From the NCBI GenBank assembly GCA_000708835.1, contig DF236998.1, positions 1 to 44,774 of the forward strand: a stretch of DNA of 44,774 nucleotides, read 5' to 3'. The stretch comes from Klebsormidium nitens (Eukaryota; Plantae; Klebsormidiophyceae). Positions 3,465 to 36,200 of this stretch are shown one piece after another (positions within the stretch are counted from its first letter, which is position 1; each line of letters starts with the position of its first letter). The notes below the pieces were generated by a model. That model had not been told where the DNA came from. It did no database searches and worked only from the letters and a program-made list of their open reading frames with translations. The position numbers were made by a program, and so were the translations under genes.

Positions 3465-3846
3465 CCAAACAGCAATATTTGGCCATGATCGGCCCGTCAG
3501 CTCGCAGGAAACGAGCAGCGGGCAAGCGGAAATAACAGCAACAACGATGGTAGCTGATCTCGGAGATTGCAAACCGGCTCAAGGCGCCCGCGGCATATGT
3601 TTCCTCATTGCTTGAAAGAAGGAAAGCCAGTTGGCTCGCATGCGTCAATTCTGGTCTGCAAAGTATGCGGAATAGCAATCCTTTGTGCGTGCTGCAGGCC
3701 GAGCTGGCAGTATACCAAGAAAGGTTGCGAGCGTTTACAACGCTTGCAGACGCGTTCGCAAATCATATATATGTCCGCTACGAGGGATCAAGAATGCAAA
3801 AGGAGCGCTTACTGGGTTGCTCTACGACAGCCGGTGTTCTCTGATG

Positions 3847-3921
3847 AGGCAGTCAGAGGTCCGACTTTGAAAAGGAATCCCCCCTGGGGGCGGGATCCGC
3901 GATGAATCGTCCTCATTGCCT
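3847..3921 (-). ncRNA. Box C/D-like small RNA unit
   Basis: AGGCA-ATGAGGA...CTGA-c-TGCCT: 5-bp terminal stem, canonical D box, one C-box mismatch. Confidence 0.45.
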
Positions 3922-5259
3922 TGTGTAACAGTCGACCAGCTAGTGCCGAAACTAGAGCTCCAAAAGTGCTCGTTAAGACGTAGGAGACTTCATACAAGCG
4001 TATCCCGGACCTCCAGGACTGCAAAGCTGTACGGAGGGATTGACAGCGCTGTGCCCTCTTCGTGCAGATTGATATGGATACAGATGTGGGCACGAATTGC
4101 GTCAAGTCGACTGCCTCTTTTGAGTCAGTTCTCACTGAAACAGCACCGGAACTTGACTGGAATCCACCGCCATTGCTGCATATTTCAAGATATTTACAGA
4201 GGAAACAAAACCTTACCCGATAGGACTTCTACCAATTGACAGAGGAAAAACAAGGAACAGGCTTTTCGCAAGCGATTCTCCATGCAACGGAATCGTCGAT
4301 CAAACGTGCCACCCGTAAATTACTGTTACCGCTTTGGTCCTGATGGGCCATGGGGAAGTGTCATCCTTGCCCGCACGAAGGAGCCAAGTCACCGGCAAAA
4401 CGTGCGTGCCACTGGTTCAAGCCTAACGCCGTCAGCGTGGTTTCAGCGATTCTATCATTATACAGCTGGCCAAGGACATGTTGGGAAGAAGACAGGTATT
4501 CAAATCCTAGAACTACCCCCGCAACAAACTGACGCGGCCTCAAAGATGCCAAAGTGGTTCGGACCAGATAGGCGGCCAACGTAACTACTTTTGTTTGACA
4601 TTACACAGGCACCGAAATGCCTCAAATGACCAAGTGACGCCAAACTGAGACGTGCTTTTCAGGCGACCATAAATGCTTCAAGGGCAGCTTGATGACTTTT
4701 TGGTCACATTGTGGTGACTGCTGATCGATCGAGCGGATAACATTACAGCAATCAGGCACGGGCATGGGTGGCGCCCCTCTAGACCGAGGGGGGGCGGGGG
4801 GGGTTTGTGATGGGCCCTTATCTAGCAAGAAAGGCAATCGAAGGACCAACACTAACAATCTTCGGTCCTGAAAAAACACCAGTCGCTTCTCTCCACTGCC
4901 AGAAAGGAAATGCTCATCAAGTGGCCGTGGTAAAAGGTCGCCAAACCCATGTTCATTGTCAACGTACACATAAAGGACATCAACAAATGATAAACCAACG
5001 CCGCGCAGTGCAAATCGGGCGCGAACCAGCTTGTTGAAGGTTTGACAAATAAAGTCGAGCATTGGGCACGTGACGTTATATGTGCAAACTAATTAGGTTT
5101 CTCGAGCATCCCGGCCGACGTGAAACATCAGGACACGTACACTCTGTGATACAAGCGTCCCACAGCGCAGTCCACGTGAGATTATCCCATTCAGCGCTCT
5201 ACTACCCCGTGCTGAACTTCGTAACATACAATCTTATCGTCTAGATGCAAGAGAGGCGG

Positions 5260-8200: not shown

Positions 8201-8530
8201 ATCCTTACCTGCAAAATCATATACCGGCGCAAAATCATGTACCGGTTGAAAACGTTGGGATAAGGAGACAGTTTCCCGCAAGCGATTCTCCAACCCGTTC
8301 GTTTGGATGTGCCGCCAAATATAGCATATTGGTTACGGAGGGCAATCCGGCAGCCATGGCACCCTTTTGGCCTATCGGCCATGGTGACGTGTCATCCTTG
8401 CCCGTACGAAGGAGCAGAAAGTCTCGACAAAAAGAGCGCGCCACAACTCTAGCCTAAGGGTAAGGGCGGTGTTCCATACTGTCAATCAACATACAGTGGC
8501 CAAGGAAATGTTAAGAAGAAGAGGTGAACT
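5260..8530. repeat. Diverged ~3.2-4 kb direct duplication, unit 2
   Basis: Partner of 1330-4530. Many indels and no shared reading frame found. May begin near 4830 (aatcttcggtcctgaaa resembles 1320). Confidence 0.85.
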
Positions 8531-11500: not shown

Positions 11501-13905
11501 GGCAGCGCTGAGCAGCCTAACCGCCGCGGCCGGCCGGCCGCTCGGGCTTCCTTACGGAGTTCGGACCCGGAACTGGAACGAATTGCAACCGAAGGCCGTC
11601 AAAACGACACGGAGGCGCCCTTCCGGTCCGCCTAAATCAAACCCTTGATGGGGAAACTCGGTAAGAAAGAGGAAACCAACCTTACTAACCCGTCGTCCAT
11701 ATGTTCCAACGTACAGTAGGAGAATATAAAGCAAGCCAACGCCAAAAGCTTTAGATCTTGTCCTGATCCAATCTGTTCCCACAGCCGGGACGGCAACGGC
11801 CACGGCATCTCTCTGTTGCTCCTCTACAAGGAAACCAAGACGGCTCGAATCAGACGAGGAGGGCCGTCGCTTTTCCGGCCGCGGAGCAAACAGCGGAAAA
11901 CAACACACTCCACAAGCGAACGGCATTTGTTGGACCGCGTGCGACATAGTTTGTCAGAACTTGTGCTGGGATTTCTGTGCAAAAACCTTGCATACATGTT
12001 TAATAAAACCAATCAGATCGCTGCCGTGGCTCTTCAGGCCACGGCGTCTGGTCTTCATCGCTCTAGGAATAGAAGCAACCAACGTGATGTGATTCCAGTA
12101 AGAACGAGCAAGGCCTTCGATCTTGGCTACAGCATCAAGTACGGAGTTTGTGCACAATCTGCAGAAAGACGTTCCTACGACCAGACCCAAGCATTGCCAT
12201 CCAGATAATTGGGGTGGAATACTTGGCCATCGAACTATCTCAATACTGCTGACTCCAATAGCACTGTTTGTGGTTGCAATTGACAGAAAGGCAAATGAGC
12301 AGCCTCCCTAAGTCAACACAATCGAGACAAGTAGAAGGGAAAAGACGTAAGGCTTCCTAGAAGTCAAGGGCTCTCAATAAAAAGAAGCCAAATCAGCATG
12401 CAAAGTTGAACGGAAGACCAGGCGAAGGGGCTGTCGGTGTTGCATTCACCGTAACCAATATTGGCCCGAAAAGACCATTGGCTCGACGTCATCGCCCTCA
12501 GAGTAATAGCTTGAGAGTCATGGGATTGTGACGAATGTGGCTTCTGAACAAAATTGTGGACAGCGTGTTTCAAGACTATTGTCTTACACCCAGATGAGGG
12601 TTGTCCCACAGAAGGCGATTATTTGTCTTCGGGGGATGCAGTGTCAGGCGGTCTGTGGTTAAACTGTGGGATGAAGCCCGACGTTCGTCCAGAAGCGGAG
12701 CAATAATCACAGGGAATGATCAGCGACGGAGAGCTTCGGAACTCGAGCCGGTGGAGTGGATAAGCAATCGCAGATTGTTAGCAAGACTAAGCATAGCAAG
12801 CTAAAGGCGATCACGTCCATCAAAGTGCAAATGGTCCTAATCAACCAGGGCATCATTGCCATCTGAAATGTCAAATGGAGCGCAGATTGGAACAAGCTCC
12901 AAGCACGGTTGGGAGCATGCATCTGTGGCGCCAACGAAATGAACTCCATCGGATGCACAGCAAATGAGTGGAGCGATATGGCAACAGACCCGTCGAAGGA
13001 GATCAGGATAACTGCAAGTGTTTTGGCTCAAGTGAAAGCACCACGACAGCAGGGTGCTAGATTTCAAGCCCCAAAAGCGCCTTGAAAGCAATGCGTTTAC
13101 TACGGGTTTGGCAACCCCTTTATGATTGAGCAAGAGGCTAGTCATCAGGTGGACGTGAGAATGTCGACTTGAAGATGCATGGAACGGAGGGTTTGGCAAG
13201 AGACGTCAGCATGTGGTCAGCATGCAGTCAACTCTGGTGACGTCATCACTGGTCTTCTCTGATCCCCATGGACTAGTGCTGACGTCACCGGAGTTTGCTA
13301 TGGCCATTCATAAGCCGTTGCCTGCTCGGCACGCCCATCGGACTCTGAAGCTCGCTCACTGTGGCTTTGAAAAGGCCAAGGCAGTCTGTCTTCATTGTCC
13401 TCAAACAACACTATAATTGGAACCACTCACAGGAACCGGCCAGATGGCAACGCAAGTTGGAAAGGGCCGTAGAAATAAGGAGCTTGCTGTTTCCAAGACA
13501 CGCGAAGCAGATAGGACAGCCCGCATAAGACAAGGGTTCGGCACGCAAGTCAGCTTCCGTCCTGACTCGACCTGAGAATTGATGCATTTCTTTTCAGACA
13601 ACACCAGTAAGCGAGAAAACGTGATTCGAAGTGCGACAGAATGCTGGGAAGTGACGCTCCTAGGCGGGAGCTTGATGCAAACGAATGTTTTCCGTGAATA
13701 TTATTGGAAGTCTTTGGGTGCATGTAAGGTGACTTGATTTGGTAAGGAGAGACAGAGAGTGGCTTCATAACAGTCGCCTTCAATGCAAGACTTAACGCAT
13801 CCAAGTGTAACACGCTGTAAAACGCTTAAGGGTTTTGTACCGTAAAGAGATGTCACACGTCGTTGAAAGTTTTGATCAAACGCACAACAAAGCTACTGGC
13901 GACTC

Positions 13906-16630: not shown

Positions 16631-16753
16631 CTTTACATCACGGTTTTGCAAGCGCCCACTTACTGGGCAAGTCACAACCCAACCCCGGTAGACAAATTGA
16701 AGTTAAAAGCCCCATCGCATTGAAACCCATCTCACAACCCGTTCCTAACCCAC

Positions 16754-17011
16754 CTTGGCCAGCTCGTCCCGCACGACCCGCATGCTGCACTGGAAGTTCA
16801 TCGGCACCACGTCCTTCGCCAGCGATTCCGCCAGCTTCATTCCGTTCGCTTCCGCTTTCTCGCGGAGCTTGGCCACCCAGGGGTGGTCTTTCCCAAGCGA
16901 GAACGGTTCGTCCTTGATGGCGACGTTGATCTGCTCGAGGACAGCGTTGGCGTCGCCGAGAAGGGGCACGGCGGGCTTGCGCAGCTTGAGCTCGTCCTCC
17001 GAAATGTCAAT
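16754..17011 (-). CDS. HACL1: Duplicated exon 10b
   Basis: tgcag|ATTGAC..AAG|gtgggt; [21 protein letters not shown]...[11 protein letters not shown]; 258 nt; 12 differences from 10a, 10 of them synonymous. Confidence 0.7.
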
Positions 17012-17374
17012 CTGCATAAGAGAATTGTTTTGTTCTGACAGTCTCTTACTTTTCTGCTCCGGCAATGTGCTTTATTGGTTGTGGAACGGAACCGCCAAAG
17101 TTCTGACTTACTCACAAAACTTCGACGGGTTAGGAGATTCGGGAAATAAACAGCCAGGCTACAGAAATTTGTCTTTGCAAACTGTGAAAACAATCAGAAA
17201 TCAGAGAGAGGCGACGTTGCATTGCCGCTTCAGTGTCCAACCAAACCACCAATTGTACAATCGACATCTTTGCGAAGTCAGCAATCACAACATGGAAGTC
17301 AGAGGAAGGTCCTTGACGATTCTTAGTCTCTTCCTCCGAAAAAAGAAAAGCTGAGTGTGATCTAAGGGTATTGC

Positions 17375-20300
17375 AGAGGGCCTTCAGAACATCAGGACTG
17401 GATGGCCAAGGGTGACCACGCATGTCGTCTTCATTGCCCTTCAACAAAAAGCCATCAGCTTCAGAAGCAAAAGCGGTAACCCTTCTTTGCGGGGCCAAGA
17501 CCGCAGGCGACGAGTGCACGTGCGCTTAGCGGCAGCTATTCAAGGACATATGAGACCTGAAATGACTTCGAAAGCCGTCCAGCATAGAGCAAAAACAGAA
17601 GAAAACCTGTGAACTGCGGTTTTGTGGAGGTTCAGTTTGCAAATCACTTGAATTGCTCGTTTCAAGATTAACAACCGAGCGACCAGAACCCAGATACTAG
17701 AATTGCAGATTCCAACGTGCTTCGTTGCGTGCAAGGGCAATCACAAAGTCGGAGTTCCTGGCCACGCACAATGACCGTCATCATCGCCCACGACAAAAAG
17801 CGTATCAGAGGTTACCAGGAAAGGAAGGGTCCACCAGCGAAGACGTTGCCCATATTCAAGCAAGAGAGGTGGACAATCTGCACTTGCCGATGCGGGGCGA
17901 ACTAGCGTCAAAATTCAAGTGAAGAACTTAAGCACCGGACCATGGTGTCCCGCACACTTTCCAGAACGTGAGTGGGTGACGCCATCGGGACCAAGTACCG
18001 TTCACCAGTTGAGACTAGTCAAATGATGACACGGCAAGGATGCCGGACTTGCAGTCTTTACATGCTGCAGTGCTGCGCTCACTAGATCTCAATGCAGGAC
18101 GTCAAGAGTCAGCTAGATACGTAAGCTTTGTGATTTCTGCTGCCGCGTATTTCGGCGTATTAAGTCACGGGCTCCCGGTTCAAAACTTTGAAAACTGGCC
18201 CAGACGGCCATGGTGGTGAGTCGTCCTCGCCCGTCATGTTTTACAACATCCAAAGATAGCAGCAAGAGTTCTCCTGCTTTGGGGACCAACATTCAGCAGC
18301 TCTTAGCAGATTGACGACGACGGACTGGACCATGCGTCAGATGGGCGAGCAAAAGGCAGAAGAACGATTTGCATGTTACCAAAAGCTTGCTAAAAATATG
18401 AAGAGGAGGCGGCAATACGGTAGGAAGAAGATTTAATGAGACGCTGTCACGATGGTTCCGAGGTTCTTTAGATTATTCGCGGGACACAGTTTCAGAATGA
18501 TTTGACAGGCGATCCGATTTGGGAAAATGGCCCCTAAGGGGCCAGGAATTTATTTATTATCGCTCTCAAAATCAGCAAAGTGAGTGTCGAACCTGATTCG
18601 GTTCTCAACGAAACTCTCTAAGCAGACGGCTTCAGTCCAACTGTTTTCAAAAACCAGGAAAATCAAACTCCCCGGACATGTACAGCCAGGCGCGATGGGA
18701 TTCGTCCTTCGGCTGCAATCGCAATGAGATCTAGAACACTGTACTGCCGTTTCGCTAGTCAAGCTAAGCACCAGTTGTTCACAGGACAACGCGGCTTGTC
18801 TGTAAGCACAGCGAAAAAAGAGAGATCAAACTTCCTTCGAAGTCGAAGAGATAATCTATCCCTTTGATTCTGTACACACTGGAAGGTGAATAGTAATCCA
18901 CGGCTGCAGAGGGCATTCAGAACGGTTACACAAAGCCGGCGTGCAGCGGCCAAGATTAACCCCGCACGTCATCTCTCACTGCCCCCTATACACAATCCTG
19001 TCAGCTTCAGAAGTGGCATGCTTCTACTTTAGGCCAGCACTCGAGGCCAAAAACGTGTGTGCCGCTAGCGGCAGCTATCTGCTGTACTGTACATGAGGGG
19101 ATCATACAACCGATTCACAAAAGTGTCATGTAGGCACTGAAAAATTACACAACCTACGGTTTGCGGTCTAATGTATGTTTTGACTGTAAAATACACAGGA
19201 TTCGACGTCCCCGGTGAAGAGAAGAAAGCGGGCAGAAAATAGGGGAGGCCAGTATGCTAACACGTCATCATCGCCCATGTGAAGAAAACCCGATAAGGTT
19301 CTCAAATAGGTGGGGTAAGACAGCGAGGGTAGTTGACGATATCAAGCAAGCAAGTAAACAGTCGCCAACTGACAGGTAGACTAGTTTCACAAATCACCTT
19401 GTAAGCACATGTGCTAGCGCTGACCATCGCGCCGACAAGCGTTTTTTTCAGGTCGACGTCCGTGGTATTTGATGCTCGTCACCTTATCAAACTACGCAAG
19501 ACATATATAGGCAAGGAGGCAGCAACCATGAGGTTATCGCATGCTGCATTCCTGCAAATCCTGGAGACTAAGCATCACGCTCCAAGTCGGCTCGCTTCCT
19601 ACGGTATGCTTGACAACATAGTCCGCAAGATGACTCACAGGCTGTCCGGGATCGTCCACCTATGGCCCAAGACGGCCATGGCGGCAAGTCGTCCTCGCCT
19701 GTCAGCTTACGACTTCCAAAAATAGCAGCAGGCAACGCCCTTGTTAGGGCCTCAATATTCAGCAACGAAGCAGCAAGGACGGACTGGAGCAGGTGCCAAA
19801 TAGACGAGCAAAGGCCGCACGGTCAATTCTGCAAGCCGGCAGATGCTCGCTTAGGAGTTCAACAGGAGGAAGTAAAAAGCAAACCGGACAAGAACCTGCA
19901 CGGCCCTAAAACCCTAAAACCCGAAGAAAAGTTGTTTTTCCGGAATCTGGCGAGATCAATCTCAATTGGTCGTTCGAAATTTAGGCATCCGAAAAGCTGA
20001 ATGGCCCCTCAAGAGCCAGGAGCTTTGACGTCATCGCCCTCAGAAGCTTGCAAAGGGGCCCTCGATGCTGTTTCCCAGCATGTGAAGCGTCAAACACACT
20101 TGCTAACCTGCCATGACTAGGATACTAACTGCCAGACCGGACTGGAGTCCTGAGTCGGAACATGCTGAAACATCCTACTTTTGAACCGTCCACAATGCGA
20201 CCTCTAAAATTTAGCAAAAGACGTGGCGGCAACCGGACACCGATGATGGTGAGTACAGACACCGATGCTGACGTCATGCGACTCCTAAGGCTTGCGAAAA

Positions 20301-22906
20301 TTCTGACATCGGCCACTGTAATCGACCATGACAGCATCTTAGGGGAACAGACAGCATGTTAGCGTTCCCCTTCCATAAAGAAGAATCAGCAACAGTACCA
20401 TGTCTACTGCCAATATGTAACAACCAATCCAAGTCAGCAGCAAGCCCGCTAAAAAGCAGCTTTGAGGACGGCAATGGTTCATGCTTCTTCAGGCGTTGAA
20501 TACTTTATCGAAGCTCGGCCGCTCCGGACTAGGGGGCGAAGACCATCGTAGCCCTTGATAGAAAAGCCAGCTTGACTTGACGACACGTCGGCCCTCCTTG
20601 GCAGAATTACGCAGGCGCTTTTGTAATTTCAATCGCTTGTCAGAGTCGGCACTGTTGCGGCAAACGTGAAAGAGAGTGAGAAAACTCCATGATCTGATCC
20701 AATCTGGACGTCGTCTTCTGCAGATGTAAGAACATCGTCTTTCGCTGGGTCCGAAACATCGCTTGTCGGCGAGTCAGTTGCCTCCTATCCTCGTGTCAAA
20801 GTTGTCGATTCAGCAGCACTTGAAAAAGCACAGAAAGGCAGGCATGCACGCGGACAAGATCTCCACATAACTCAAATACACCTCGCTGGAAGAAAAAGTA
20901 AGGATGTGATTGCGGAGACAGCTGTCCCTAATGCATACGAAGCGGGGAGCGGGGCCGAACTCGTTTCTGAAGGAACGGGGCAGGCTTTGAAACGTCGCCC
21001 GTTTCCCTATGCCACGTCAGGTTGCTTTTCAAGGGCAGTCTGGTGGTACCTTTTCTGCTTTAGGCCCTGACGGCCCACTAAGACGGTTGCATCCTCGCCC
21101 TTACCAGCATAATTCTGGGCGTGCCTCTACTGTTTCCTTAGAGATGAGCAACTGTGTAGGTTTCGAGCCCGCTTGTGACGTGCTGGTTTGAGAGACCGGC
21201 CAAGTGATGTCAACCAGGGAACATTGAATAACCGAATGAAGGAACCCCGACAACAAAGAAATAGAGGATGATAACTAGAGTAAGCTCCAGAGAAGGACAG
21301 TGAGTATCGCTGCGACGTGCGCTTTCACGTGCAATAAAGCGTCATCAGCAAAGACTTTTACAAACGAACTAACAAGCCAGCAAGACGAAGGGGGTGGGAC
21401 GCGCCCTTCTCTTGCACTAGTGCAGCAATCCGCTTTGCGAAAAATAGTACATAAGTTCCAATTACTTGGTGATCAATAGTCTGCGAGTGTTCCACCAACC
21501 TACCGGCTCTTTCGAAGTCGTTCTTTAGAGGGCAATCGAGCCGATCCGCAAATGCTTGTGCCCTTGAAGGCGGTGGCGGCTTCTCATCATCGCCAAAGGG
21601 TGTCCCCTGATAGTGTTGACAGCGCCAGCAGGGAGCGCTTGCTTCTGGCGCGTAGAACAGGGCAAACGCACAACGCGTCCAGCGACAACCAGGATAACCT
21701 TCAGCATCGCAAGAAGCCAATTCTGGTCAGCCAACCTCCACATTTGACGAGAGAGTGACGTGGCAATCAGACCCACCAAACACGTAGCCCTGCTGGGCCA
21801 AAAGCGCTGGTCATCATGACCTCCGAACAAAGACCGGCACCTCGCACCAGATGAGCAACGGGCGAGGCGAGCCAGGACAAAGAACAAGGAAGCAGAGCCA
21901 GGGTGCGATGTTGTTGAAGAAGTATATCAGATCTCGACGGGGCTCTGACTATGCTCCGAGTGACCTGGGCTTGAAGTGGCCGTGCCAGCTTGTCATCACT
22001 GCCTCACAGAACGGCTTGTCATAAACTTCAAAAGACCGGCAGATTGCACAAGAGCAACACTCAGGCATTCCGGCTTGCATTGTGGCGTGGCCCAGAGTGA
22101 CCAGAGACATAATGTCATTGCCTGAAACCCGAGCGTGAATGCTTGATATGTGGGACCAGACTCTTCGACTTTTCCACCGTAATGGGAATCACAACATGTC
22201 GCGCGTCAAGCAGCGATACTGAAAATGCACAAATGACCGATTAAGACGGAGCTAGAATGACAATTTTGCATGCTGTTCCAGAGTAATAGTGAACCCCTAG
22301 CCCTTGGGCGTCCTAGGATGACGCGAAAGAAGGGTCAAACAACGACCGCGTCTCCTACATTACCGTCCAAAGAAGAGTGGCGTTTGAGAGCAGTAGCGGA
22401 TGAGTGATAAGAGGACTGTTGGAGCCGTCATTGAAATCCAGCGGGCACTTTAGCCATCCATCTCAAACGGAGATTTCAAGTCCGGACATCGACAGACAAG
22501 GGCAATCAAAGAGTAGGTAGTTGGGTTGGGAATCCCAAAATCAACTTCTCATCATGGCCCCAACGACTGGACAGTGTTTTTCAAACAAAGCGGTCCATCA
22601 GCGAGGCAAATTTTGCACTTGCACGGCAGAGACAGTCACCTCTAGATCACGCGCGTTCTAACGTTTCCATGGCGGTCACATATTTTCTCCAATCGCAAGG
22701 GCGAACTCTAGGCCACATATCGGAGAGGCAAAGGAAAGGTGCGGCAAGACAGCGCGAACGTCGAGATTCCCGTACCACAAACAACATCGATTTTGAAGTG
22801 TTAGCCAGCATCCACAATCACATAAGCAAAAACCTGATATGGAGGGCAATCTGGTTCTGAGCACAGCATTGGCCTTGAGAGGCCGCAGCGTAGGTCTTCA
22901 TTGCTC
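17375..22906 (-). ncRNA. Array of box C/D-like units in intron 9b
   Basis: 3' arms on the + strand (GTCATCATYGCC-like) at about 17427, 17777, 18220, 18553, 18968, 19264, 19688, 20027, 21089, 21583, 21810, 21992, 22548 and 22894. Most have a GGCAATC-like arm 55-75 nt upstream. Confidence 0.55.
21761..21822 (-). ncRNA. Box C/D-like unit with canonical C and D boxes
   Basis: ggtc-ATGATGA-ccagcgcttttggcccagcagggctacgtgtttggtgggt-CTGA-ttgcca. Confidence 0.55.
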
Positions 22907-23391
22907 GCAAACGACTGAGGAATCTGCCAACTTCCTAATTCCTATGCAGAAACGGACACGAAATCTCCCTTGCACAGAAGAGGAAGGAACTGAGAGTGCA
23001 CTGTGGCTCTGATCACGACTCATCTTTCGACAAACGACGAGTCGCGAAGGACTTTTGTGATACCAGCTTTACGAACAAGAGACACGCTGATCGTTCCCAA
23101 GGCTGCTGGCAACGTTGGACATCGTTCAGCAGCGACAGGCCGTACAGTGACTAGTCGCAGCGGAATCAGACGACGAAGAGCAGTCACGACAAGCCGCAAT
23201 TCCTTGTAGAAGCCCAAAGACTGCCAAAATGAAATGCCCAAAACCTGCATTTACGGCACTATCCGACACTATCCCACAGTCCAACCCAATGATTGGCAGG
23301 ATAGTCGATGGCCGAATTCTGGGCCTATGATGATCCAGAAAGCAGGTCTGTGAGCGACGTGACGTCGGTGTGACGCCACACGGCACCTCAC

Positions 23392-23543
23392 CTGGACGTA
23401 CTTGACGTCCTTGCTTTACCATGGTGGCTCCCCGGAGTGCAGCAGCCAGTTGAGTTGCGCGCCCACGACGAGTACCACGTCAGCGCCCACGAGCGCAAGG
23501 CCCTGAGCGGCCCCTGCGTTCAGCGGCTCGCTTTCCGGCACGA
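23392..23543 (-). pseudogene. Truncated copy of the 3' end of exon 9, marking the duplication junction
   Basis: [49 protein letters not shown]|gtgagg, homologous to 35983-36134. In-frame TAA at 23416-23418 and no acceptor. Confidence 0.9.
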
Positions 23544-24058
23544 AAGTATTGGTTGGCGTTTGACCGGAAATCCGGTTTGGTCTGCGAGCTTATTGCATGG
23601 TGGTAATTGATCACACCAGTCTTCAGTGAGGCATGTACTCTCCTTAGATGCCTAAAGTACGACACAACTCTAGCCTTCACAACCAACCTAGCCTGTTCAC
23701 AAACTCAGCATTTGATCTGGAAGGGACGAGCGCAAGAACGTGGCGCTCCCTTTGAGGCCGGGTGCTTTTCAATCGTAGAATGGGTAGGAAAATGATGGCC
23801 GTGCGATCGAGTGCATGAAGTCAGCGCTCCCAGGCGGAAGCTCGACAAGGCCTTTTTGTAAGCCTCTGCATGGCCGCTTTCAATCGGAACGCAGGGAGGA
23901 TAATGATTTCACTTCCGTCGCCTTCAACGGCAGACGGTATTTAAGAATCAGACTGTACACGCTCTGAAGCTTTCAAGTCTGCTATCGTAAAGAGGTGTCA
24001 AACGTCGTTAAAGTTCTGATCAAACCCACAACAAAGCTGCTGGCAAGCGAAGCAACTC

Positions 24059-24230
24059 TCAGTTCCTGCTGTGCATCCTCCCGCTCTCGGATCCAGCGAA
24101 CGGGTCGATGACGGCGTTGATGACGGCCGGCTTTTTCGCGGCAAACGCTTCCCGGCAGGCGGCCACGAGCTCGGCCGGAGTCCTCACGAAGTAACCCTTG
24201 CCTCCGAAGGCCTCGATGATCTGGTCGTAT
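24059..24230 (-). CDS. HACL1: Exon 13a (terminal)
   Basis: ttcag|ATAC..AACTGA; [12 protein letters not shown]...SGRMHSRN*, matching the plant HACL C-terminus (AESGRLQHKN, recalled). Confidence 0.92.
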
Positions 24231-27200
24231 CTGAATCAGGAAAGAGGCAAAAAATATTTAGAGACGAGATTGACAAGACCACAAGAGACGAGAACGCGGT
24301 GCCGCTGCGCTCCGTGCAGAATCCTTATGTAGACGTCAAGTAGACAAATATGTTCCGGCTTGGCGCAGGGCGTCGCGGACCAGTAAGCCGTAACTAGAAG
24401 GAAATGAGTGGGTACTTTTGCTGCAGATTTCCTTTTCAACCTTGTTTCCCCAGCGGATCTGACGAACATCAGCCCCACAATTGAAACCGAAGCGCGAACG
24501 TCAGGAACCGCGGGTTACCAGCATTGAAGACGTCATCTATCAGGGCTCAGCCTTCAGAGCTCCAACTTTGGGCAGAATGGGCAGAATAATGGACACCCGA
24601 CTTCGAAGAAGCCGCATTATCCGTGTGAGCTAAGAATGCAGAAGTCTACCAAAGCAAGCGGCATAGTAAAATGGGACTACGTCCGCACCTTGCTTCGGAC
24701 ACAAAGTCGGTGGGCGCCGGGTCGGACGCGTACGGACCGCCGAGCTCCGCGTCCTCCCTGCGATCGCCGCCGTAAATGCCGCTGTTGTTGAAGACGATCA
24801 CGACGACCGGCAGGTTATACCGGACAAGCACCTGCAACGTGCGGACGTCCGAAGTTTTGAGAAAGTTTCGATCCGGGCGGTCTGCAAACCTTGCGCAAGA
24901 GGCGTATGGAAAGAAGTTGGAGACATTGCGAACGGCAGCAAGTTACAAAGAGGCGAAAAGAACACCCAGCTCCAAATGACGCAGAAGCCGAGAATGATAA
25001 GTTTTGCGCATCTGCAACACGCCGGTTCCGAAGTTTCTGGAGAAGGGGTTGTTACGCGCACAAAGTGTGTGAGAGGTTTTCAAAACAATGTTCTAGACAC
25101 TGCGCACTCCGCGCGCTTCAACAACGAGAAACGAACACCGAGCGTCGAAACGACCGGAGGCCGAGGATGTCAGATTCGAGGCCTGGGCTTTGCAGTCCAG
25201 GAAGGCTGAAAGCCAAGAGCCAAGTCGTCTTCGTCAGCCGCCTCAAAGCGCTTCCTGTTCTTCTCCGAACATCAAATCCTGACAAATTGCAAATTGATTA
25301 TAACGGAGCTCTTCCTTGCCTCGCCTCAACGGCACTGAAAGCAAAGTTCCCCTCTTTGGCGACCAAGAGGGGCTTCTCGTCCTTCCCGAAAGAGTGTGAC
25401 TGTAAAGCCGAAAGTCTAGTTAAGAAACTCTTCTCCTTACCCCAACCTCAGTGGCACTGAAGCCAAAAGCGAAGCTTACCCTCGACGACGACTACGAGGC
25501 GCTTCGAGAAAGGTATTCCAAAAGATCGAAATGCTGGTTAGAAGAAAAACATTTCCCTGGCCTCGAGTGCAACGGTACTAAACCCAACAGTTGTACAGAC
25601 TGGTCAACACAAACCCTTCCCTCACCTCGACCTCAACGGCGCTAAACCCGAAAGCGGAGTCCCCTTCGACGGCAACAACGAGTCTCTTCCCGTCGTTGAC
25701 CACCGCAGCCGCGATAGCATACCCCATGCCCACGCCCATCGTGCCCCACGTGCCGGCGTCGAGGCGCGTACGCGGCTCTTCCTGGTTGAGAACCGTCCGT
25801 CCGACGTCCATTGTGTTGGCGCCCTCGGAAACCAGGATTGGATGAGGGCCTTCAACCTGTGGGTTTACAGAAATTTGGTGACCATTTTTGGCCTTCGGCT
25901 GATAGTGTTCCAGAGGGTTGGTGGGGTTTTGAGTCGGGTTAAGGTAAGGGTTCAAGTGCGTTCTGGTCGAGCACCGGCCACTCAACGTCCTCCGAAACCA
26001 GGACTGGGTGAGGGCCCTCGACCTGAGAAAAAGGGTTGAAAAAGGGTGTTAGGGTAATTGCGAGGGCGTCGAGGGGAGTGCGGGCCTCTTCCTGGTTGAG
26101 AACCGTCCGTCCGACGTCCATCGTGTTGGCGCCCTCGGAAACCACGATCGGGATGGGGACCTTTAACCTAGAGAATTATACGGAGGGTTAGTAACATTTT
26201 ATGGCTTTCAACCGATTGTGTTCCACAGAAGGTCAGTGGATTCCTTGAATTGGGGTAAAGGTTTATAGAGCATTCTGGTTCAACACCGTCCGGTGGACGT
26301 CCATCCCGTTGGCGCCACCGGGAACCGATGTGGGCCGTCGACCTTTGGGATTCTGCGGATGGTTAGCGAGGTTGTTGATTATTCTAATATGACACGGTGT
26401 ACTTGCTCCGCATGCCGGAGCAAACCTAGGAACTACTGAACGGAAATCGGGTTGCAGTATGAGAGTTTAAACTCTGCCAACCCTTCACAAAGCAAACTGC
26501 CTGGTGGAAGCCCGTGGATGCCTCTCAGCAGTACTGGTAGACCGCTTGAAGCAGATTCAGCCTTTTTGAATTTATCTCACAACTTCAAAGAGCTGGAAAA
26601 ACCCGCGATTTGCTGCCAAACCCTCTTCAGAACAGTTCCGAACCCGTCCTTGATCCAACTCACAAACCATGTCTCACCTCCCAGGGGGAACTCGTTACGC
26701 AAACCTTGCATTCCGCTTCTTAATGGACCAGAAAAAAAAATGCTGTGTGCGCTCTCAGCGCCTTCAAACCAACTTTATACCACCGCCGAACAATCTCGAT
26801 TCACCCCGAGACTTGAGGTCGTCTGGGGGTGATCCAAAGTTGGTTTGGAGGAGCCAACCCACATCAGCCCACACTTGACCCACTGGAAACCACTCCCACA
26901 TCACTCTCCACGCACTCTTAACCTACCTTTAACTCACCTTTGGCCATCTCGTCCGATACCACCCGCATGCCGCACCAAACAGTCCCAGCACCACAATCTT
27001 CATCAGCACCATATTCCCCCAAGGCAAATCGAAACCCCTCCATACAAACGGAAATCAGCCCCAACTATCTAAAACCGATCTCAAAACCGGTCCTAAACCC
27101 ACCTTGGCCAGCTCGTCCCGCACGACCCGCATGCTGCACTGGAAGTTCATCGGCACCACGTCCTTCGCCAGCGATTCCGCCAGCCTCTTTCCGTTCGCTT

Positions 27201-30200
27201 CCGCTTTCTCGCGGAGCTTTGCCACCCAGGGGTGGTCTTTCCCAAGGGAGAACGGCTCGTCTTTAATGGCGACGTTGATCTGCTCGAGCACCGCGTTTGC
27301 GTCGCCGAGAAGGGGCACGGCGGGCTTGCGCAGCTTGAGCTCGTCCTCGGAGATGTCAATCTGCGAAGAAACCACAAACCTTTTGTTTGGATAAGACAAA
27401 GTCTTGGTATTTCTTATACTGCTCCGGCACTTTGCTCTGATAAGGTGCGAACACCACTGCTACAGTTTATGTTACTCACCAAAAGCTACGAAGTTCGAGA
27501 TCCCTGAGCACGTACAGTCAGCTGGATAAATGCTTCTACAAACTGCCATTGCTAAAAACACCGCACTCACTGCAATGCCATCACTTGTACACAAGACAAG
27601 GCAACGCAAATGTAAGGCAAGCACGTTGGGGGAAGTCAAAGGGAGCTTTCTCTCATATGGCTTTGTTCGGCATACAGAGTGTGATTTGGAGGTTTGAGAA
27701 AGGCAGTCAAACCGCTGCAAGAAATCAGGTGGCCAAGAATGACCAAGCATGTCACATTTCATTGCCCTTCTTACTAACATCTTTTGGAGAAGCCGCGAAG
27801 GAACTTCACGCTTTTCCATGTGAAACCTGGAGGCGACACAGATGTGCAGCTAGCAGCGGCCATCCAAGGACGTACGAGAACCGAAAAAGCGTGCAAGCCG
27901 TCACGTACAAAGTGAAAGAAGGAGGACAACCTCTGATTTGCGGTTCCGTGAAAAATTGGGTTTGCAAACCAGATTAATGCTCGAGTAAACAACTAAGCGA
28001 CCAGAGTACAGATACTATCAACGCAAAGTGCGACGGTGCTTCGCTGCGTGCAAGGGCAATCATACGCATGCAGGCAAAATTGCCCCCTCCAGGATTTTGC
28101 ACAACTGACACGTCATCATTGCCCACCAAACAGCGTGGTAGAAGTTACAGGAAAGGAAGGGTCCACCAGCGAAAAAGTTGCCCGGGATCAAGCGAAAGAG
28201 GTGCACAATTAGCGACTTGCCAACTGCGAAGTGAAGTAGCGGCAAATATCGTGTGAAGCATGTAGCACCGGAAAAAATCATGGTGTCAGGCAAACGTTTC
28301 AAAGCGTAATTGGATGACGTTAGAGGAGTTAAAAACTGTTCACCAATCCAGGCTGGTCAAGACATGACAAGGCGAGGAGGCAGGAATTCCAGTCTTTATA
28401 TGCTGCTGTGCTGTACTTCGTTGAAGTTCAATGAACGACGTCAAAAGTCAGCTAGATACCAACGGTTTGTGGTTTCTGCTGCCACGTACTTTGCAGCAAA
28501 ATCCCGGACTATCCGAACGCAACGCTATTCAAGATTGGCCCAGACGGCCATGGTGGTGAGTCGTCCTGGCCCGTCATGTTTTGCAACATCCCCAAATACC
28601 AGCAAGAGCTCTCCTTGTTTGAGCAACAACAAATTTCAGCAGCTCTTAGCAAACGGACGACGACAGATTGGACCATGCGTCAGATGGACGAGCAAAAGGC
28701 ACAAGAACAACTTGCATGTTACCAAAAGCTTGCTTAAAACATAAAGAGGAGGCGACAATGGAGTAGAAAGTACATTCGTTGAGAAGCTGCCACAGCGTTG
28801 TAACCTTGGCAAAACCACTCAGGTCCTTTCGAGCGTTTGCCGGACAAGCTTCCCCAAAGTCAGCCAAACAATTCTGGACCTCGAATGGCCCCTTAGGGGC
28901 CAGGCAGTATTGCATCATCGCCCTCAGCTTTCGCAGAGGGCCTCTCTAACCTGTCCGGTAAGGAAGGTGTGAATCAGACGACATCAGGCTTTCTTTACTT
29001 TGAGGAAGCAGGGAATTCGAATACCCTGTACATGTACAACCAGGCCCAATATATTCGTCCTTACAGCTGCCAGCAATGAATAAAATCGTACGAGACTGCT
29101 CCCGCAATCAAGAAAACGACCTTTTGAATACAAAAGGGGAGACAGAAACAGAAACAGAAAACCGGGGTGACATAAGCATATCTGAGGTCAAATGAAAGCT
29201 CCTTTGGGGTTTCTTCCTTTAAATTTGTGTGGCGGCATAAAGCGAACCGTGATTCGCGGCGAGGTGCCGAGGGCATTCCGAAGGAGTAGGCAGAAAAGCG
29301 AACGGCAGTGGCCAAGAGTCACCCCGCACGTTATCTTCACTGCCCTTCATTGAAAGGTCTCTCAGCATCAAAAGTGGCATGCTTCCATACTAGGCCAGCA
29401 CTGGAGGGAAAAACTATTCGGGTAAAAGCGGCAGCTATCTGCTGTACATGAGCGGATCGACCGAGCCTGAAATCGGCTATGTAGGCACCCTAAAAACACA
29501 CAACTTATGGTTGCGGTCTTATGTATGTTTTGACTTCAAAAAAGACATGTGTCGCTTCTCCGGTGAAGGAAAGACAGCGGGCAGAAAACGCATCATAATC
29601 ATCCACGACCGGCGACGTGCGTCGTTGCTTGCACGGGCAATCACACGAAAGCACAAGCTCTGGCCCCTGGCCATGTATGCTGAAACGTCATCATTTGCCC
29701 TTGAAAAAAGGCCATTAAGTTCCTCAAAAGGTAGGACCCAACACTAGCGAGTGCATTTCACGACATCAAGCAGCACGTCAAGAGCTAGTCGCCAAACGAC
29801 AGGTTGACGAGTCTCAAAAGTCCCCTTGTAAGCACATGCGATAGCACTGAACACCGCGCCGACAGCGCTCTTCTGAAAACAGATCAGATTGACATCAGTG
29901 GGATCTGGTGCTGGTCATCTTCTCATATCATTCGGAATTTTACAAGTCAAGGAGGCAGGTATCGTAGTCTTCACATGCTGCATCCCAGCAGGTTGTGGAG
30001 ATTCAGGCATGACGCCCAAAGTCAGCTACCGTCTTACGGTATGTTTGGCAATATTAGTCCGCAAGACGACTCACAGGCTGTCCGGGTTTCTCTTACGACC
30101 TCTGGCCCAAGACGGCCATGGCAATAAGTCGTCCTCGCCTTTTAGCTTTCCAGAGATATCAGCAAGAAACGTCCTTGTTGGGGCCTTAACATTCAGCAAC

Positions 30201-33200
30201 TAAGCGACAAGGACGGACTGTAGCAGGCGTCAACCTAACAAGCACAGGAGACCCAAATCAGTTTGCAAGCTGGCAGACGCCCGAAAGGGAGTTGAACAGA
30301 AGAAAGTGGAAAGCAAACCGGACGTGAAGCTGCCACGGTACTGTAGTCGACGGCGTCGCTCCTATACTCGAAATGTTTTTGGGGTATTTAACGAGACCAA
30401 TCTCAAATCAGTCTCAGATCGAACTTCAGGCATTCTGATAAAGGCGCTCTGGCCCCTCAAGAGCCAGGGGCTTTGACGTCATCGCCCTCGGAAGCTTACA
30501 AGGCAACCCGCTGCTACTACCCAGCATGTGTAGCATCAGAATAGTTGGTAATAGCGTCATATCTACGTAGGAAACTGTTAAGCCAGACTTAAGTCCTGGT
30601 CGGAACATGCTCGTTGCGTCGGCCACTCTGATTGACCACGTCAGCATGCCAGCTTTCCCCTTCGTTATGGAAAAAACCAGCAATAGTGCGAGAGTCGAAC
30701 ACGAAGCGGAGGCAATCGTGAGAGTCTTCCCTCTGTGCGGCCGTCAGGGACTATAAAATCGTCAAGGCCTCGAGCCATCCTTTTGATAGTAGGACAGTTT
30801 GGATAGAAAGTGCCGCCTTAAATTCGACAGTCGAAACCCAGACCCTGACAGCGAACAGGAGGTAATATAAGCCTATGACGTCAGGAGCACTCAAACAAAA
30901 TCAAGCCCCTTTTTTGCATAAAGGCATCAGGGGAAGAACATCTTCCACATGGCCCCAAGGAGACCATGGGCGGTTCGTCGTCGTTGCCACTCAGGAAAAG
31001 TACTGAAGCCAACAGTCAGCAACACAAAACCCCAAAGCACGCATCTGAATCTCGTCTGCAGCACATGGCAATTCAGAAAACTTTGCTTATGCATTGCTCA
31101 GCAAGAGCGCCGGGCGCCTCAAGGTCCTTATCAAGGTATAAGCTCCGGAAAGCACGGACCTGTCCAGTAGACGATCTAGTCCGAAAGATTGAAAGTCGCC
31201 CACTCGTAAGGCAGTGACAATGGTTCGAGACAGAATTGACGAGAATTGGAGAAAGAACCGACGCAGTCCTGAGATCTTCGTCGTCTGCGTTCATCCGCTT
31301 CGTGAAACGACCTTGACCGCAGACAATGGCAGCGCACAGTGACATCCTAAACCTGGCAAACAGAGCCCAGCAAGACACCAAGCTCGTTTCTGTTCTGCCT
31401 TCACGATAGGGTGACGCAACGTGTGACGTGGCCGTTCATGTGCCACATCATATGCCCTCCTAGGCTACTGTGGCAGGTCATCATTGCCTCCACGCAAAGA
31501 GCAGCGGACGGACAAAATCGGTGCCGTGAGCTGAGCCGCGAGCAAAGGAATGTATTACGTCGCAGGCTACAAACTGTTTCAACACTGGAGCATTTCACCA
31601 AGATGCCGGCCTTGGTCTTAGGGGGTCCCGGACGGCTTGTTTTCACCACCTGACCCACAGAAAAGAGGACCGAAAGGGAACCTGACAGCTTGCACTTGAA
31701 GGGATCGAGCACGTGGCGACTGCCTTGCATTGCATCGATGATGGCCAGTTCCCAATTTTCTGCACCGTGCATATTGGAGGAGCCAAGACTCAACGATATT
31801 CTAAGCATAGCAACAATCAATAGTAGGTAACAGCGACTCAAGTCAGCAGCAAGCCCGCTAAAAGGCTGCTCTCTGGACGGGCATGGTCCATGCTTCTTTG
31901 GGCATCAGTCCTCCCCGAAGCTTGGCCTCTTTGGACCAGGGGAAAAAGAACATCGTAGCCGTTGATTGAACACCAAGCGTGACTTGTCGACACGTCGGCC
32001 CTACTTGGGCAGTTCTACGGAAGGCCTTATAATTTCGGGCATGTTAAAGTCGGCACTGCTGCGACCAACGAGAAAGAGAGCGACAATGCTCCATGTATCT
32101 GACCCAATCTGGACGTCTTCTCCGAAGCGAGGACGTCGTCTTACGCTAATTCTAACACACCGTGGTTTGGTGAGTCACTTGCCCCCTATCCTCATTTCGT
32201 CCTACAAATAGCAGCACTTTGAAAAAAGAAAGAATCAACACACGCACACCTGCATAAAGGTCTAAACAAACTCCAGACTTCACTTTGATGAAAGCAAAAC
32301 AGCTCTGTGACTCGGTTGTCCCTAATGCACAAAGAACGGGAAAGGGGGCCAAAATTAGTCCTGCGCGACAATGAAAACCTCAAGGAACGAGACAGGCAAT
32401 ATCTTCATTCCTCCATGCCAAGTCAACTTGCATACGGGCGGCAGTCAGTGAATGCCACCATTTTCTGCGTAGGCCGTGACAACCCATGAAAGCGCATTGC
32501 ATCCTTGCCGTAACCAGCATAAAAGCAGGGCGTGCCTAAGCAGACCCGGCAACAAAGAAAGAATAAATAACCGGCTTTAAAAACCTCCAGAAGGGACGGT
32601 CAGCGACGCTGTGATGTCCAAATTTCACGTGCAGATAGGTGTCATCAGGGAAAACTCCAAGAGGCGAACGACATCGTCTTTTTGTTGCCTATCTGGCCAG
32701 CAAGACGAAGGCGGGTGGGCATGAGCCTCTTTTAACACGGATGCATACGTCCGATTTGCAGGAAAAAGTGCACAGGTTCCAACCGCTTGTAAAGATTCAT
32801 ACTCCGCAAGTGTTCCACCAACCTGTGCTCTTATTGCCCTCCGTAAAGGGCAATCAAGATAGGATCCAAATGCATATGCCCTTGAAGGCGGCGGCCCCTT
32901 GTCATCATCGCCAAAGAGCCTCCCAAAAACAGAGTTGGCAGCGCCAGAAGCGAGCGTTTGCTTCGGCGCGTGGAACAGGGCAAACACACAACGAAGCAAC
33001 CGACGGGTGATACACAGATAAGCCAGTCAAGGCGACTTGTGACAAAAGGATAAGCAAAAGATGACGACAAAAGAGAAAGGAACCAGAAGCGGCCAGGACG
33101 TCTTGTCGCCTGCATTTCTCAACGAACCAAAGACAAGGTGAGGAACAGAAGCATTAGCAGCGTGATGTGCCATCCAAGAAAAGCAATGATAATTCGAGCA

Positions 33201-36200
33201 GCACAAGGGAATCGGTGTCAGTCAACCATCCTCCACATGTGACACAGAGAACGACGTGGCAATCAAAGCAACCCTGGACCTTAGCCCTGCTGGGCCATAG
33301 CCACCTGTTCATCATTGCCGTCAAGCAAAGAAAGACAGCTCACATCAAACAATGGGCGAGGCAAGCCGGCACAAAGGATAGCAACTTAGACCTCGTAACG
33401 AGATAATCATTTCTGCAACCATCCTCTGCGCAGGCAAAAACCACCTTCAATCCGAACCCCGGACACCTGTTCCAAAGAACGTTGCATTTTGTGGAAGGTA
33501 GAAATTAAGACTTCACAATATTGAACCACCTTTCAAGGAAGAGTGCGCAACCTCAGAGAGCGCATTCCGACCGATCTCGCCAAAATAGTTAGCCGAAAAA
33601 CATTGTCCTAGAGCTTTAGTAGAGCCAAACGCCACCTTGGCAGAACAGCTCTCGAGAAAACACCTGTCAGCGATTGTTATAGAGGACACTATCGTTGGAG
33701 TCAACGGGGCTGCGAAAGGAGAGCACGTAAGTATGAAAACGCCAACACCTTTCAATCAGCAACAAGCACTTCACGGCGTCCGGCACAAATCCAAGGTTGG
33801 CAACGCGGTGCACATCTTAAACGCAGGCTTTACTGAGAAGCGCCAATGAAAGCGAAAGTCTCATAATGTCATGCCGCGTACACTAGCCAGCGTCTGCTTT
33901 TTATAAGACACGGTGCTGAGGCGGTCAGGCGTCCTCCGCTCCGAACCGTGACACAAAGGCCGTAAAAGCTGTTAGAAGCTGATTGTCGCTTACATGTGCC
34001 TCAAGGCAAGCCCGTCTTCTAACCCAGCGCAACGTGAGGTGCAATTCATGTGGATGACTAGCAACCGGCAAAGGCAAGAGACAGGTCAAAATTGGATAAG
34101 GCTTGTACAGCGAGACCAGAGGAAGCACATTGAAGAAGGCCAAGCCAACTTTCACGTGTGGATTCGGCTGACACTTCAACACTCACGGAGGTTTTTACGA
34201 TTCTAATAGCACCAAAACCCAGCCTGTCCGGACGATCATCATACATGGCATGGCGTCAATATTTCATGGCCCGTAAGCTGGCCAAAGGCGCCATTCATCA
34301 CCGCCAAGCTTCTTACGACCTCCAGTACTCAAACGAGGCACCCCACCATGCTGCTTTCAGCACAAGAAAGAACAACGTGCTGCAAATCTTGGATACTGCA
34401 CACAGCGAGACTTGCTGCATATGGGCACTAAAGAAATGATTGAGCTCGTCACGCCCGTTCACGCTGCTTTCACAAAAGAAGAATGGAACTGTTGACAATC
34501 TGGCGGTTGATGGCCCGCAACATCCTGCAATATCTGATCTCTGCTCTCAGTTCTTGAAAGTGTGCATCTCCCGATCCACGTATGCAGGTGATGGGCTATC
34601 AGACAACAGGGATATAATACCTGCCCTTAAGGCCAACCTAGTTGGTCATAAAAGCCCTCAATAGTACCGTTTGAGCAACAGTCATGTTAACAAAGTAATT
34701 GCTTCAATCGCGTTTCCCAAGCCTGAAACTGTGCATTGCAGTCAAAATCATATGAGCGAGTATTCCTTGAATCTGCTGATCTCACCACATATCGCACCAG
34801 GCAGGCCAGCGTACTCGTCACCAACCAACAGAAGCGAAATGTCGGACGGAGGCCGTTCCGTGATGTCACAGGCTCAGATTTGCTTGATCCTAGTGGACTC
34901 GGACTACCCAAAAGTTCTCACGAGCCTTTCCTAGCATGGCACCAACGAAGGGTTGAATAACGTTTGCATCTCCTAGCATCACCGACCTTAGAAGGGTGGC
35001 CTTAGAGAACTGTGGTGTGATGTTAACAAGGTGACTGTTTGAGGCGTCACCAAGGATCTAAGCAGACTTTCGTAGAGGGAAGCAAACTTAATTCCACAGG
35101 CGAGGGCGTCGCAAGTTGTAGGAACGTGTGGGTTGCAAACACCAAACCAACTTTTCTTCATGGCCCAAAAGACCGGCGACTGCATATCTAAAAAAACGGC
35201 TAGTAGCGGAACGACATGTGCAATAGCAATACGGGCTGAGACACACAGCGCTAGAGAACGCAAGGTCTCCAATTGGAAGGACAATAATGGACGACAGGCT
35301 GAGAGGGCGTGAAACTCGCGCGGCAGGGTAAGAGAAAGTCAACAAGAGGGTTCATATGGCGAGGACATATTGCAGACTAAAGCGTCTGCAAGAACTTGGA
35401 ACCTAGCGTGCGCAACAGCAGCAGAGGGACAAGGGCAATCGACTACACTTTCCTGATTGGCCCTGAGATGCCGTGGCCTGAATCTTCATTGCCCGAAATG
35501 AACGACTGCATTGCCAAATAGTAAGTAGCATACACGAAAGACAAGCCTTCTGCCGCCAGCGCGAATCAGGGCGTGGACGCAAGTGCTTGGGGGTGTTGAC
35601 CCATTGGCCACATATTTCCACGACGATGTCGCAAAGGCTTCGTGAAATATGGCCTCATGAACATGAATTCCTGGTAAAGGCAATTTAAGGCGGCTGGCGG
35701 CATTGCCGTCGTCATCAGCTGGAGCGAATACTACAGGTAGACGGGAAACACTTACATGGGATTACTCCAACAAGTGGATCAGCGGTATAAGCACTCGGAA
35801 ATTTGTTTTTCTTTGAAGGACAACAGACGAGGTCAGAGTTGACACTCCTGCTTTCAACCTTTCACAAGTTTGACAGTCATTTCACACTGAATGACAAACG
35901 TATTCCCTCTCGGACAATTCTGACTTTGAAAAGCAGGCTCCAGAGCAACGTGACGTCACGCTGACGTCACCTGCAACCTCACCTGGATGAACTTGACGTC
36001 CTTGCCCCACCGCGGCGGCTCCCCGAAGTGCAGCAGCCAGTTGAGCTGCGCGCCCACGACGAGTGCCACGTCAGCGCCCGCGAGCGCGAGGCTGCGCGCC
36101 GCGCCCGCGTTCAACGGGTGGCTGTCCGGCACGACGCCCTTCCCCATCGGCGTGGCGATGAACGGAATTCCGGTCCGGTCCACGAGCGAGCGGATCCCGT

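Follow-up and report, generated by a model that had tools for sequence, protein, structure and literature searches.

Does a giant intron of the alga Klebsormidium nitens carry an array of box C/D small nucleolar RNAs (snoRNAs), or are its repeated units something else? We analyzed a stretch of 44,774 nucleotides (contig DF236998.1 of GenBank assembly GCA_000708835.1, positions 1 to 44,774; hereafter the window). An original prediction, made from the letters alone, had placed about 30 units of a single snoRNA-like family there, at 17375-35495, within intron 9 of a minus-strand gene. We found that "box C/D snoRNA-like" describes the architecture of these units well, and that their membership among the snoRNAs fails on the D box, on the kink-turn spacing and on the guide. 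As far as the sequence can tell, there is about an even chance that the units represent a lineage-specific, tandemly amplified orphan family of C/D-like, kink-turn-type RNA modules.

Units on the sense strand of a giant intron

Nineteen clear units were aligned, and a covariance model (R1) was built from them with the closing stem only. Both strands of the window, and of the window alone, were searched with R1 with the filters off, and matches at E<=0.01 were taken as firm units. R1 gave 30 matches at this threshold and 40 matches at E<=0.1. All 40 were on the minus strand, which is the sense strand of the host gene, as had been predicted. The top match on the plus strand (E=0.17) overlapped a minus-strand unit and was its palindromic shadow. 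A loose pattern of the 5′ motif gave a similar picture, with 27 matches on the minus strand versus three on the plus strand. The R1 matches were confined to three blocks, referred to here as arrays A, B and C. None of them was found in the exon cassettes of the host gene or in its other introns at 36-44.7 kb.

Self-comparison of the window revealed a duplication of about 10 kb (13734-23589 = 23879-36187) with an offset of about 10.3 kb. The duplication gave the gene two 3′ exon cassettes, A (13.7-17.0 kb) and B (23.9-27.4 kb), each with non-coding sequence before it. In contigs from four RNA-library runs, the match ended at 17014 and continued with the last bases of the exon at 35983. The contigs with zero mismatches represented cassette A, and those with two mismatches, which were deeper, represented its twin in cassette B. 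A GT donor and an AG at both acceptors were present at the array-bearing intron, and the Pfam domain was read in the order 31-108 and then 101-137. The contig junctions together with the domain order indicated that cassettes A and B are both spliced to the same upstream exon (35983). Giant intron 9 is real: it extends over 17015-35982, or over 27364-35982 in its shorter version. The intronic location assigned to the units was thus confirmed by the junctions, the splice signals and the domain order. Judged by contig depth, cassette B was used about 5-15 times as much as cassette A (X1: 1030 versus 193 and 95; X19: 116 versus 7). The exons next to the arrays and the arrays themselves are as follows.

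35983..36198, minus strand: host exon upstream of the arrays; TPP_enzyme_M 31-108; donor GT at 35982-35981; 3′ end joined to 17014/27363 in RNA contigs
27097..27363, minus strand: first exon of cassette B; differs from its cassette A twin at 2 of the 45 nt next to the acceptor
16748..17014, minus strand: first exon of cassette A; TPP_enzyme_M 101-137; acceptor AG immediately upstream of 17014
27701..35494, minus strand: array B; 11 firm and about 4 weak units; between the 35983 exon and cassette B (R1, splice junction, Pfam order)
17378..22906, minus strand: array A; 10 firm and about 4 weak units; between cassettes B and A; paralogue of array B (R1, colinear alignment)
2640..12063, minus strand: array C; 9 firm units (3398-11442) and weak matches; downstream of cassette A (R1, self-BLAST)

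Within 17375-35495 we counted 21 firm and about eight weak units, so the predicted number of about 30 was fair. The predicted extent was right for arrays A and B, but array C with its nine firm units had been missed. We did not find a third copy of the cassette after array C inside the window using tblastn. The units were 47-95 nt long, mostly 55-75 nt, and most neighbours were 245-440 nt apart.

The arrays have a hierarchical organization. Four unit types (a-d) make up a 1.5-kb module, two modules stand in a row, and the whole block has been duplicated together with its exon cassette. The original prediction had described a single-family tandem array resembling SNORD115/116. This holds for the many same-strand intronic copies of one family, but a flat tandem family was not observed and the nested hierarchy took its place. 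Array C has an internal 3.9-kb duplication of its own (1453-4492 = 5374-8522, 63% identity by self-BLAST), in which the paralogous unit pairs are 3398/7341, 3847/7849 and 4345/8340.

Anatomy of the units

The consensus of the units reads GGGC-R-AUGAUGA-C, about 10 nt, a small UGGCC...GGCCA hairpin, a variable stretch and NNGA-UU-GCCC. The consensus proposed earlier was close to this, except that it had CUGA as the D-like box. The 3′ motif GA-UU-GCC was absent from the pattern used for picking the units, yet most units carry it at a distance of 55-75 nt downstream from the 5′ motif. Where the C box was not RUGAUGA, most changes fell at position 5, alone (AUGAAGA, AUGAGGA) or together with position 2 (AGGACGA), and the two GA were mostly kept. 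Among the D-like boxes of the 30 firm units there were six CUGA, six UUGA, six CGGA, three UCGA and seven others, and two units had none. The GA was present in 28 of 30, in agreement with the prediction that the D boxes vary while nearly always keeping it.

The two ends of a unit are asymmetric, with a C-like box at one and a D-like GA at the other, and are closed by a stem, again as had been predicted. This closing stem, GGGC(R)(A)/(U)(U)GCCC, comprises 4-6 bp. In the alignment 85% of its cells were paired, versus 16-55% when the partner strand was slid. Beside the G-A positions, G6 was opposite a D-box C or U in 15 of 19 units, A7 was opposite U in 14 of 19, and position 5 was mostly mismatched. 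This non-canonical stem pattern next to the G-A pairs fits the C/D motif. The information content rose abruptly at GGC and fell abruptly after GCC, and the flanks were random save for a weak U-rich upstream tract. RNAfold predicted closed hairpins, with the stem closed in most minimum-energy folds and a modest mean z-score of -1.2. As for the proposed stem-C...D-stem architecture, the closing stem, the C-like box, the GA and the length of 55-75 nt were all found, but few units had CUGA and most departed from the canonical kink-turn spacing. The units are listed below with their C-like box / D-like box and R1 E value.

35433..35494, minus: unit, AUGAAGA / UCGA; E 1.1e-5
33257..33320, minus: unit, AUGAUGA / UUGA; E 2.1e-7
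32848..32913, minus: unit, AUGAUGA / UUGA; E 5.3e-10; paralogue of 21530-21595
31429..31489, minus: unit, AUGAUGA, 3′ end weak; E 4.7e-3
30922..30989, minus: unit, C box degenerate / CUGA; E 7.5e-4
30428..30487, minus: unit of type d, C box shortened / CAGA; E 2.6e-3
30046..30140, minus: unit of type c, AGGACGA / CGGA; E 7.7e-3
29635..29699, minus: unit of type b, AUGAUGA / GUGA; E 6e-7
29271..29345, minus: unit of type a, GUGAAGA / CGGA; E 1.9e-9
28054..28124, minus: unit of type b, AUGAUGA / AUGA; E 2.8e-10
27701..27767, minus: unit of type a, C box degenerate / UUGA; E 4.1e-8
22844..22906, minus: unit, AUGAAGA / CAGA; E 2.9e-3
22500..22560, minus: unit, AUGAUGA / UUGA; E 6.3e-8
21761..21822, minus: unit, AUGAUGA / CUGA, the sole unit with both; E 7e-4
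21530..21595, minus: unit, AUGAUGA / UCGA; E 1.2e-11, top model score
19983..20039, minus: unit of type d, C box shortened / CGGA; E 6.9e-3
19639..19700, minus: unit of type c, AGGACGA / CGGA; E 5.9e-3
19230..19276, minus: unit of type b, AUGAUGA, D-like GA lost; E 2.3e-4
18911..18984, minus: unit of type a, C box with 1-nt insertion / CUGA; E 7.5e-9
18169..18232, minus: weak unit of type c, AGGACGA / GGGA; E 0.17
17735..17789, minus: unit of type b, AUGAUGA / GUGA; E 1.1e-5
17378..17439, minus: unit of type a, AUGAAGA / CUGA; E 1.3e-9
11376..11442, minus: array C unit; E 5.2e-4
9834..9900, minus: array C unit, GUGACGA / CCGA; E 7.1e-8
8728..8789, minus: array C unit, AUGAAGA / CGGA; E 2.9e-9
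8340..8403, minus: array C unit, AGGAUGA / CGGA; E 1.8e-6
7849..7918, minus: array C unit, AUGAGGA / CUGA; E 6e-9
7341..7409, minus: array C unit, AUGUUGA / UUGA; E 7.4e-7
4832..4901, minus: array C unit; E 8e-4
3847..3921, minus: array C unit, AUGAGGA / CUGA; E 8e-9
3398..3464, minus: array C unit, AUGAUGA / UUGA; E 1.3e-9

Constraint, transcription and competing explanations

We aligned the four 1.5-kb modules (A1, A2, B1 and B2) without regard to the units. Modules 1 and 2 were 51-53% identical, and all 16 slots (four types in four modules) still held a recognizable unit. The units were more conserved than most of the spacer. The four best-conserved 20-nt windows of the alignment all lay inside units. 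In type b they covered the C box and 5′ stem, in types a and c the UGGCC hairpin and the 5′ interior, and in type d the hairpin. As units make up about 17% of a module, the probability of this by chance is about 0.001. In addition, the four unit types share their ends but have no alignable spacer, which speaks for selective pressure on the closing motif and the 5′ half. It is likely from these comparisons that the units are under some constraint.

The whole intron was covered in contigs of RNA-labelled runs from six studies, at a word depth of about 3-10% of that of the flanking exon. The intron contigs were unspliced over 1.2-3.5 kb across several units, and one internal acceptor (21700) was seen. 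Each run comprised about 28-43 Mb of contigs. This is less than half of the published assembly of the genome, which we take to be about 100 Mb, so uniform DNA contamination is an unlikely source of the coverage. The array is therefore transcribed with the host; the runs located were all mRNA-type libraries in the form of contigs, with no small-RNA library among them, and this coverage has no bearing on small RNAs. No contig ended at a unit border, the contigs carrying no read ends.

In the reading of the units as C/D-like, kink-turn-type modules, each is a hairpin of 55-75 nt in which a 4-6 bp end stem lies beside a tandem G-A motif (a C-like R-U-G-A-N-G-A and a D-like GA), with the UGGCC...GGCCA hairpin in the middle. 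The modules are transcribed on the sense strand in the host pre-mRNA, as parts of the giant intron or introns before the two alternative 3′ cassettes. During or after splicing, an L7Ae-family protein of the Snu13 type, possibly together with a Nop56/58 scaffold, might bind the closing motif (GGGCAAUGAUGA / UGAUUGCCC). The bound closed end would then shield the module from exonucleases, and each unit, once excised, could accumulate as a small ribonucleoprotein. A wider version of this idea is tentative and on the whole doubtful. It supposes that hundreds of orphan small RNAs closed by kink-turns form one family across the genome and derive from giant introns and long non-coding arrays. They would have a variant C/D kink-turn, shifted by 2 nt and requiring only the GA of the D box, and would serve purposes other than rRNA methylation. 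They may act by stabilizing intron RNAs, by titrating an L7Ae-family protein or by adjusting which 3′ cassette is chosen.

A number of observations, in this paragraph and the next, weigh against the units being C/D-like, kink-turn-type modules. Only 11 firm units out of 30 carried RUGAUGA (within 17375-35495 about 12 if weak units are included, which bears out the predicted minimum of ten), only six carried CUGA, and a single one (21761-21822) carried both. The first picking of units forced GA-N-GA, so the per-position conservation of the C box is partly circular. In canonical C/D kink-turns (SNORD115, SNORD116, U14, U24), the GA abuts the stem and a 3-nt bulge lies opposite. Most of the firm units departed from this spacing: 24 of the 30 had two extra nucleotides, mostly UU, between the D-like GA and the stem. 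The 2-nt offset was recognized because a scanner with the canonical stem register found almost nothing. The UU can pair with the two A that precede the U, leaving a 1-nt bulge or a 3x2 loop, not the canonical 3-nt bulge, and RNAfold paired GGGCAAU with AUUGCCC straight through as a continuous 7-bp helix. No significant covariation was seen in the terminal stem or in the stem adjoining the G-A pairs. In the comparison of arrays A and B, identity was 81% in the end motifs and 67% in the spacer (P about 0.001-0.003). We discounted this difference: the units had been chosen as intact in A, which left changes to B alone, and a value of about 0.82 is then expected under neutrality. The sequence preceding the D-like box, the place of a putative D guide, had an A/B identity of 0.63, against 0.67 for the spacer, and several spacer blocks were about as well conserved as the units.

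The searches for relatives and for RNA targets pointed the same way. Rfam 15 gave no match at the gathering score. Comparison of the units with Rfam had been suggested earlier as a check on their being C/D snoRNAs, and even at E<=5 they matched no C/D family or any other. As references for ribosomal RNA (rRNA) we used metagenome proxies, not the alga's own genes: 119 ribosomal DNA (rDNA) loci were collected through a 5.8S pattern, and the 16 used were of green-plant type and held the small-subunit rRNA, the large-subunit (LSU) rRNA or both. Complementary runs present in at least four references, without anchoring, numbered 14 for the units. Controls with reversed, antisense or complemented rRNA, or with reversed or reverse-complemented units, gave 12-17, and spacer segments gave 7-19. 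Runs anchored just upstream of the D-like box numbered 16, versus 12-16 in controls.

Most of these observations are also what would be expected from a non-functional relic, that is, from an ancestral intronic snoRNA or short hairpin repeat amplified by unequal crossing-over, whose copies are now decaying and whose C/D likeness is inherited. Under this explanation the mostly non-canonical boxes, the presence of both canonical boxes in only one unit and the loss of a box in 19230-19276, in the type d units and in 31429-31489 would be signs of decay. The putative guide would evolve neutrally and lack an rRNA target, as seems to be the case, and ascertainment would account for the A/B excess at the ends, with no covariation expected. 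What a relic explains poorly is that the same ends have been kept across four unit types without alignable spacer, that 16 of 16 slots have survived about 50% divergence of the modules, and that the top four conserved windows fall in units. We regard decay as a serious rival, although we think it rather improbable.

A role in cis is a serious rival too, though we consider it unlikely. The units would then act on the pre-mRNA or the DNA, as protein-binding hairpins that organize the 19-kb intron, delay or direct splicing or affect which 3′ cassette is chosen, or as pairs that protect intron segments in the way known from sno-lncRNAs. An array does lie before each cassette, contig depth shows use of both cassettes, with B ahead of A, and RNA contigs cover the intron unusually well. 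Conservation within the units is highest in the C box and in the 5′ interior that contains the UGGCC hairpin, not in a D guide, which would also suit such a role. However, array C (2640-12063) has no cassette after it in the window, and the complementarity of the unit interiors to the host transcript was at the level of chance.

Intronic clusters on the sense strand are the usual arrangement of snoRNAs in plants and green algae, and the arrays resemble them in this respect. It might thus be asked whether the units are ordinary guides of rRNA 2′-O-methylation in a plant-type polycistronic cluster. Complements of 10-16 nt to conserved rRNA were indeed found beside a D-like box in 18169-18232, 7849-7918, 3847-3921 and 29271-29345. 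The longest, in the weak unit 18169-18232, comprised 16 nt (two of them G-U) complementary to a universally conserved stretch of LSU rRNA, AGAACUUUGAAGACUG, and was followed by UUGA. It was lacking in three paralogous units and is probably due to chance, though it is the best single guide candidate in the sequence. Complements of 10-11 nt adjoined CUGA in 7849-7918 and 3847-3921. None of the individual complements was kept in a paralogous unit, and in comparison with the proxy references, reversed rRNA, antisense rRNA and shifted anchors gave such complements at least as often. Since the D boxes are mostly non-canonical and no Rfam family is matched as well, we consider rRNA guides very improbable; judging by sequence, the units are most likely orphans. 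A 14-nt perfect match in one reference locus (L095) was also considered as an rRNA target and was rejected, as it falls in non-rRNA spacer.

Even less credit can be given to a miniature inverted-repeat transposable element with 7-bp terminal inverted repeats. GGGCAAU/AUUGCCC is a perfect inverted repeat of this length and the units fold as hairpins. Such an element, however, is hard to reconcile with 40 of 40 matches on one strand and in three blocks only, with none in the other introns or the exons of the window. No target-site duplications were found, the longest exact flank repeats being 0-4 nt in 29 of 30 units. Moreover, the ends are consistently asymmetric beyond the 7 bp, and the order of units is fixed within the duplicated modules. 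Protein-coding mini-exons, suggested by a G-D-D-D...W-P frame in several copies, were rejected because of in-frame stops, the lack of a Pfam match for the overlapping open reading frames, the lack of AG/GT signals flanking the units and the lack of a third-position substitution bias.

Known systems and neighbouring sequences

Large arrays of orphan C/D snoRNAs have so far been, to our knowledge, a mammalian curiosity (SNORD115/116) of debated function. Like the units described here, SNORD115 and SNORD116 exist in tens of same-strand family copies that arose by tandem duplication, lie in introns of a host transcript and lack complementarity to rRNA. They differ in having canonical C/D boxes and kink-turn spacing, with one copy per small intron between repeated host exons. 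In K. nitens the boxes are mostly non-canonical, the spacing is longer by 2 nt, and many units appear to lie together in a single giant intron of a protein-coding gene. The snoRNA clusters of plants and green algae (rice, Arabidopsis, Chlamydomonas, Ostreococcus) are similar in carrying several sense-strand units per intron, with U-rich spacers of a few hundred bases between them. Those clusters, however, comprise a handful of different guides with canonical boxes and identifiable rRNA targets, whereas here 30-40 units share one scaffold and have no detectable targets. Short C/D units (about 60 nt) in tandem repeats born of duplication are also found in Euglena gracilis; unlike the units of this array, they are canonical rRNA guides and are not hosted by introns. 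The U4 5′ stem-loop, the core of the selenocysteine insertion sequence (SECIS) and the L30e site have a helix closed by tandem sheared G-A pairs beside a bulged U, a structure that the unit ends could adopt, but these are single elements in specific RNAs and not amplified arrays.

A full-text literature search found no paper on snoRNA arrays in Klebsormidium. If the units are C/D-like orphan modules, this streptophyte alga, which is near the land-plant lineage, would provide an independent second system for asking what orphan arrays do. The units keep both GA and the stem but not the CUGA or the 3-nt bulge, and they would test which features are needed for snoRNP-like assembly (snoRNP, small nucleolar ribonucleoprotein). 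If they give no stable RNA, the locus would be an amplified intronic repeat of minor interest.

The longest well-conserved block between arrays A and B was not a unit but spacer (18233-18450 = 28577-28793, 84-86% identity). It lies directly upstream of a type c unit and is conserved in the older module copies too. We considered an H/ACA RNA for this spacer and rejected it, as no convincing consensus fold was obtained for the block upstream of the type c units.

The host gene on the minus strand has AMP-binding (acyl-CoA ligase) exons at 39.9-43.8 kb and, from about 37 kb downward, exons of a thiamine diphosphate (ThDP) enzyme of the oxalyl-CoA decarboxylase / 2-hydroxyacyl-CoA lyase type, both identified by Pfam. 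The two groups lie head to tail on the same strand (36-44.7 kb), which is consistent with a candidate ligase-decarboxylase fusion. Within both cassettes, a minus-strand segment of about 175 nt from the C-terminal region of the ThDP enzyme (...RLDA) is tandemly repeated, with five to six copies in A (15545-16520) and three to four in B (25755-26345). In each cassette, only one of these copies can be a normal exon.

Two further observations concern the upstream exon. Loose contig ends showed a third variant of its end, with GTTCGTC in place of GTTCATC, which suggests a further paralogue or an allele outside the window. In addition, the A-copy of the upstream exon on the minus strand, which ends at 23392 with a GT donor, is joined in one RNA contig (depth 16) to a weak acceptor near 21700, located about 100 nt upstream of unit 21530-21595. 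It seems that this duplicated "pseudo" upstream exon was spliced to a cryptic exon within array A.

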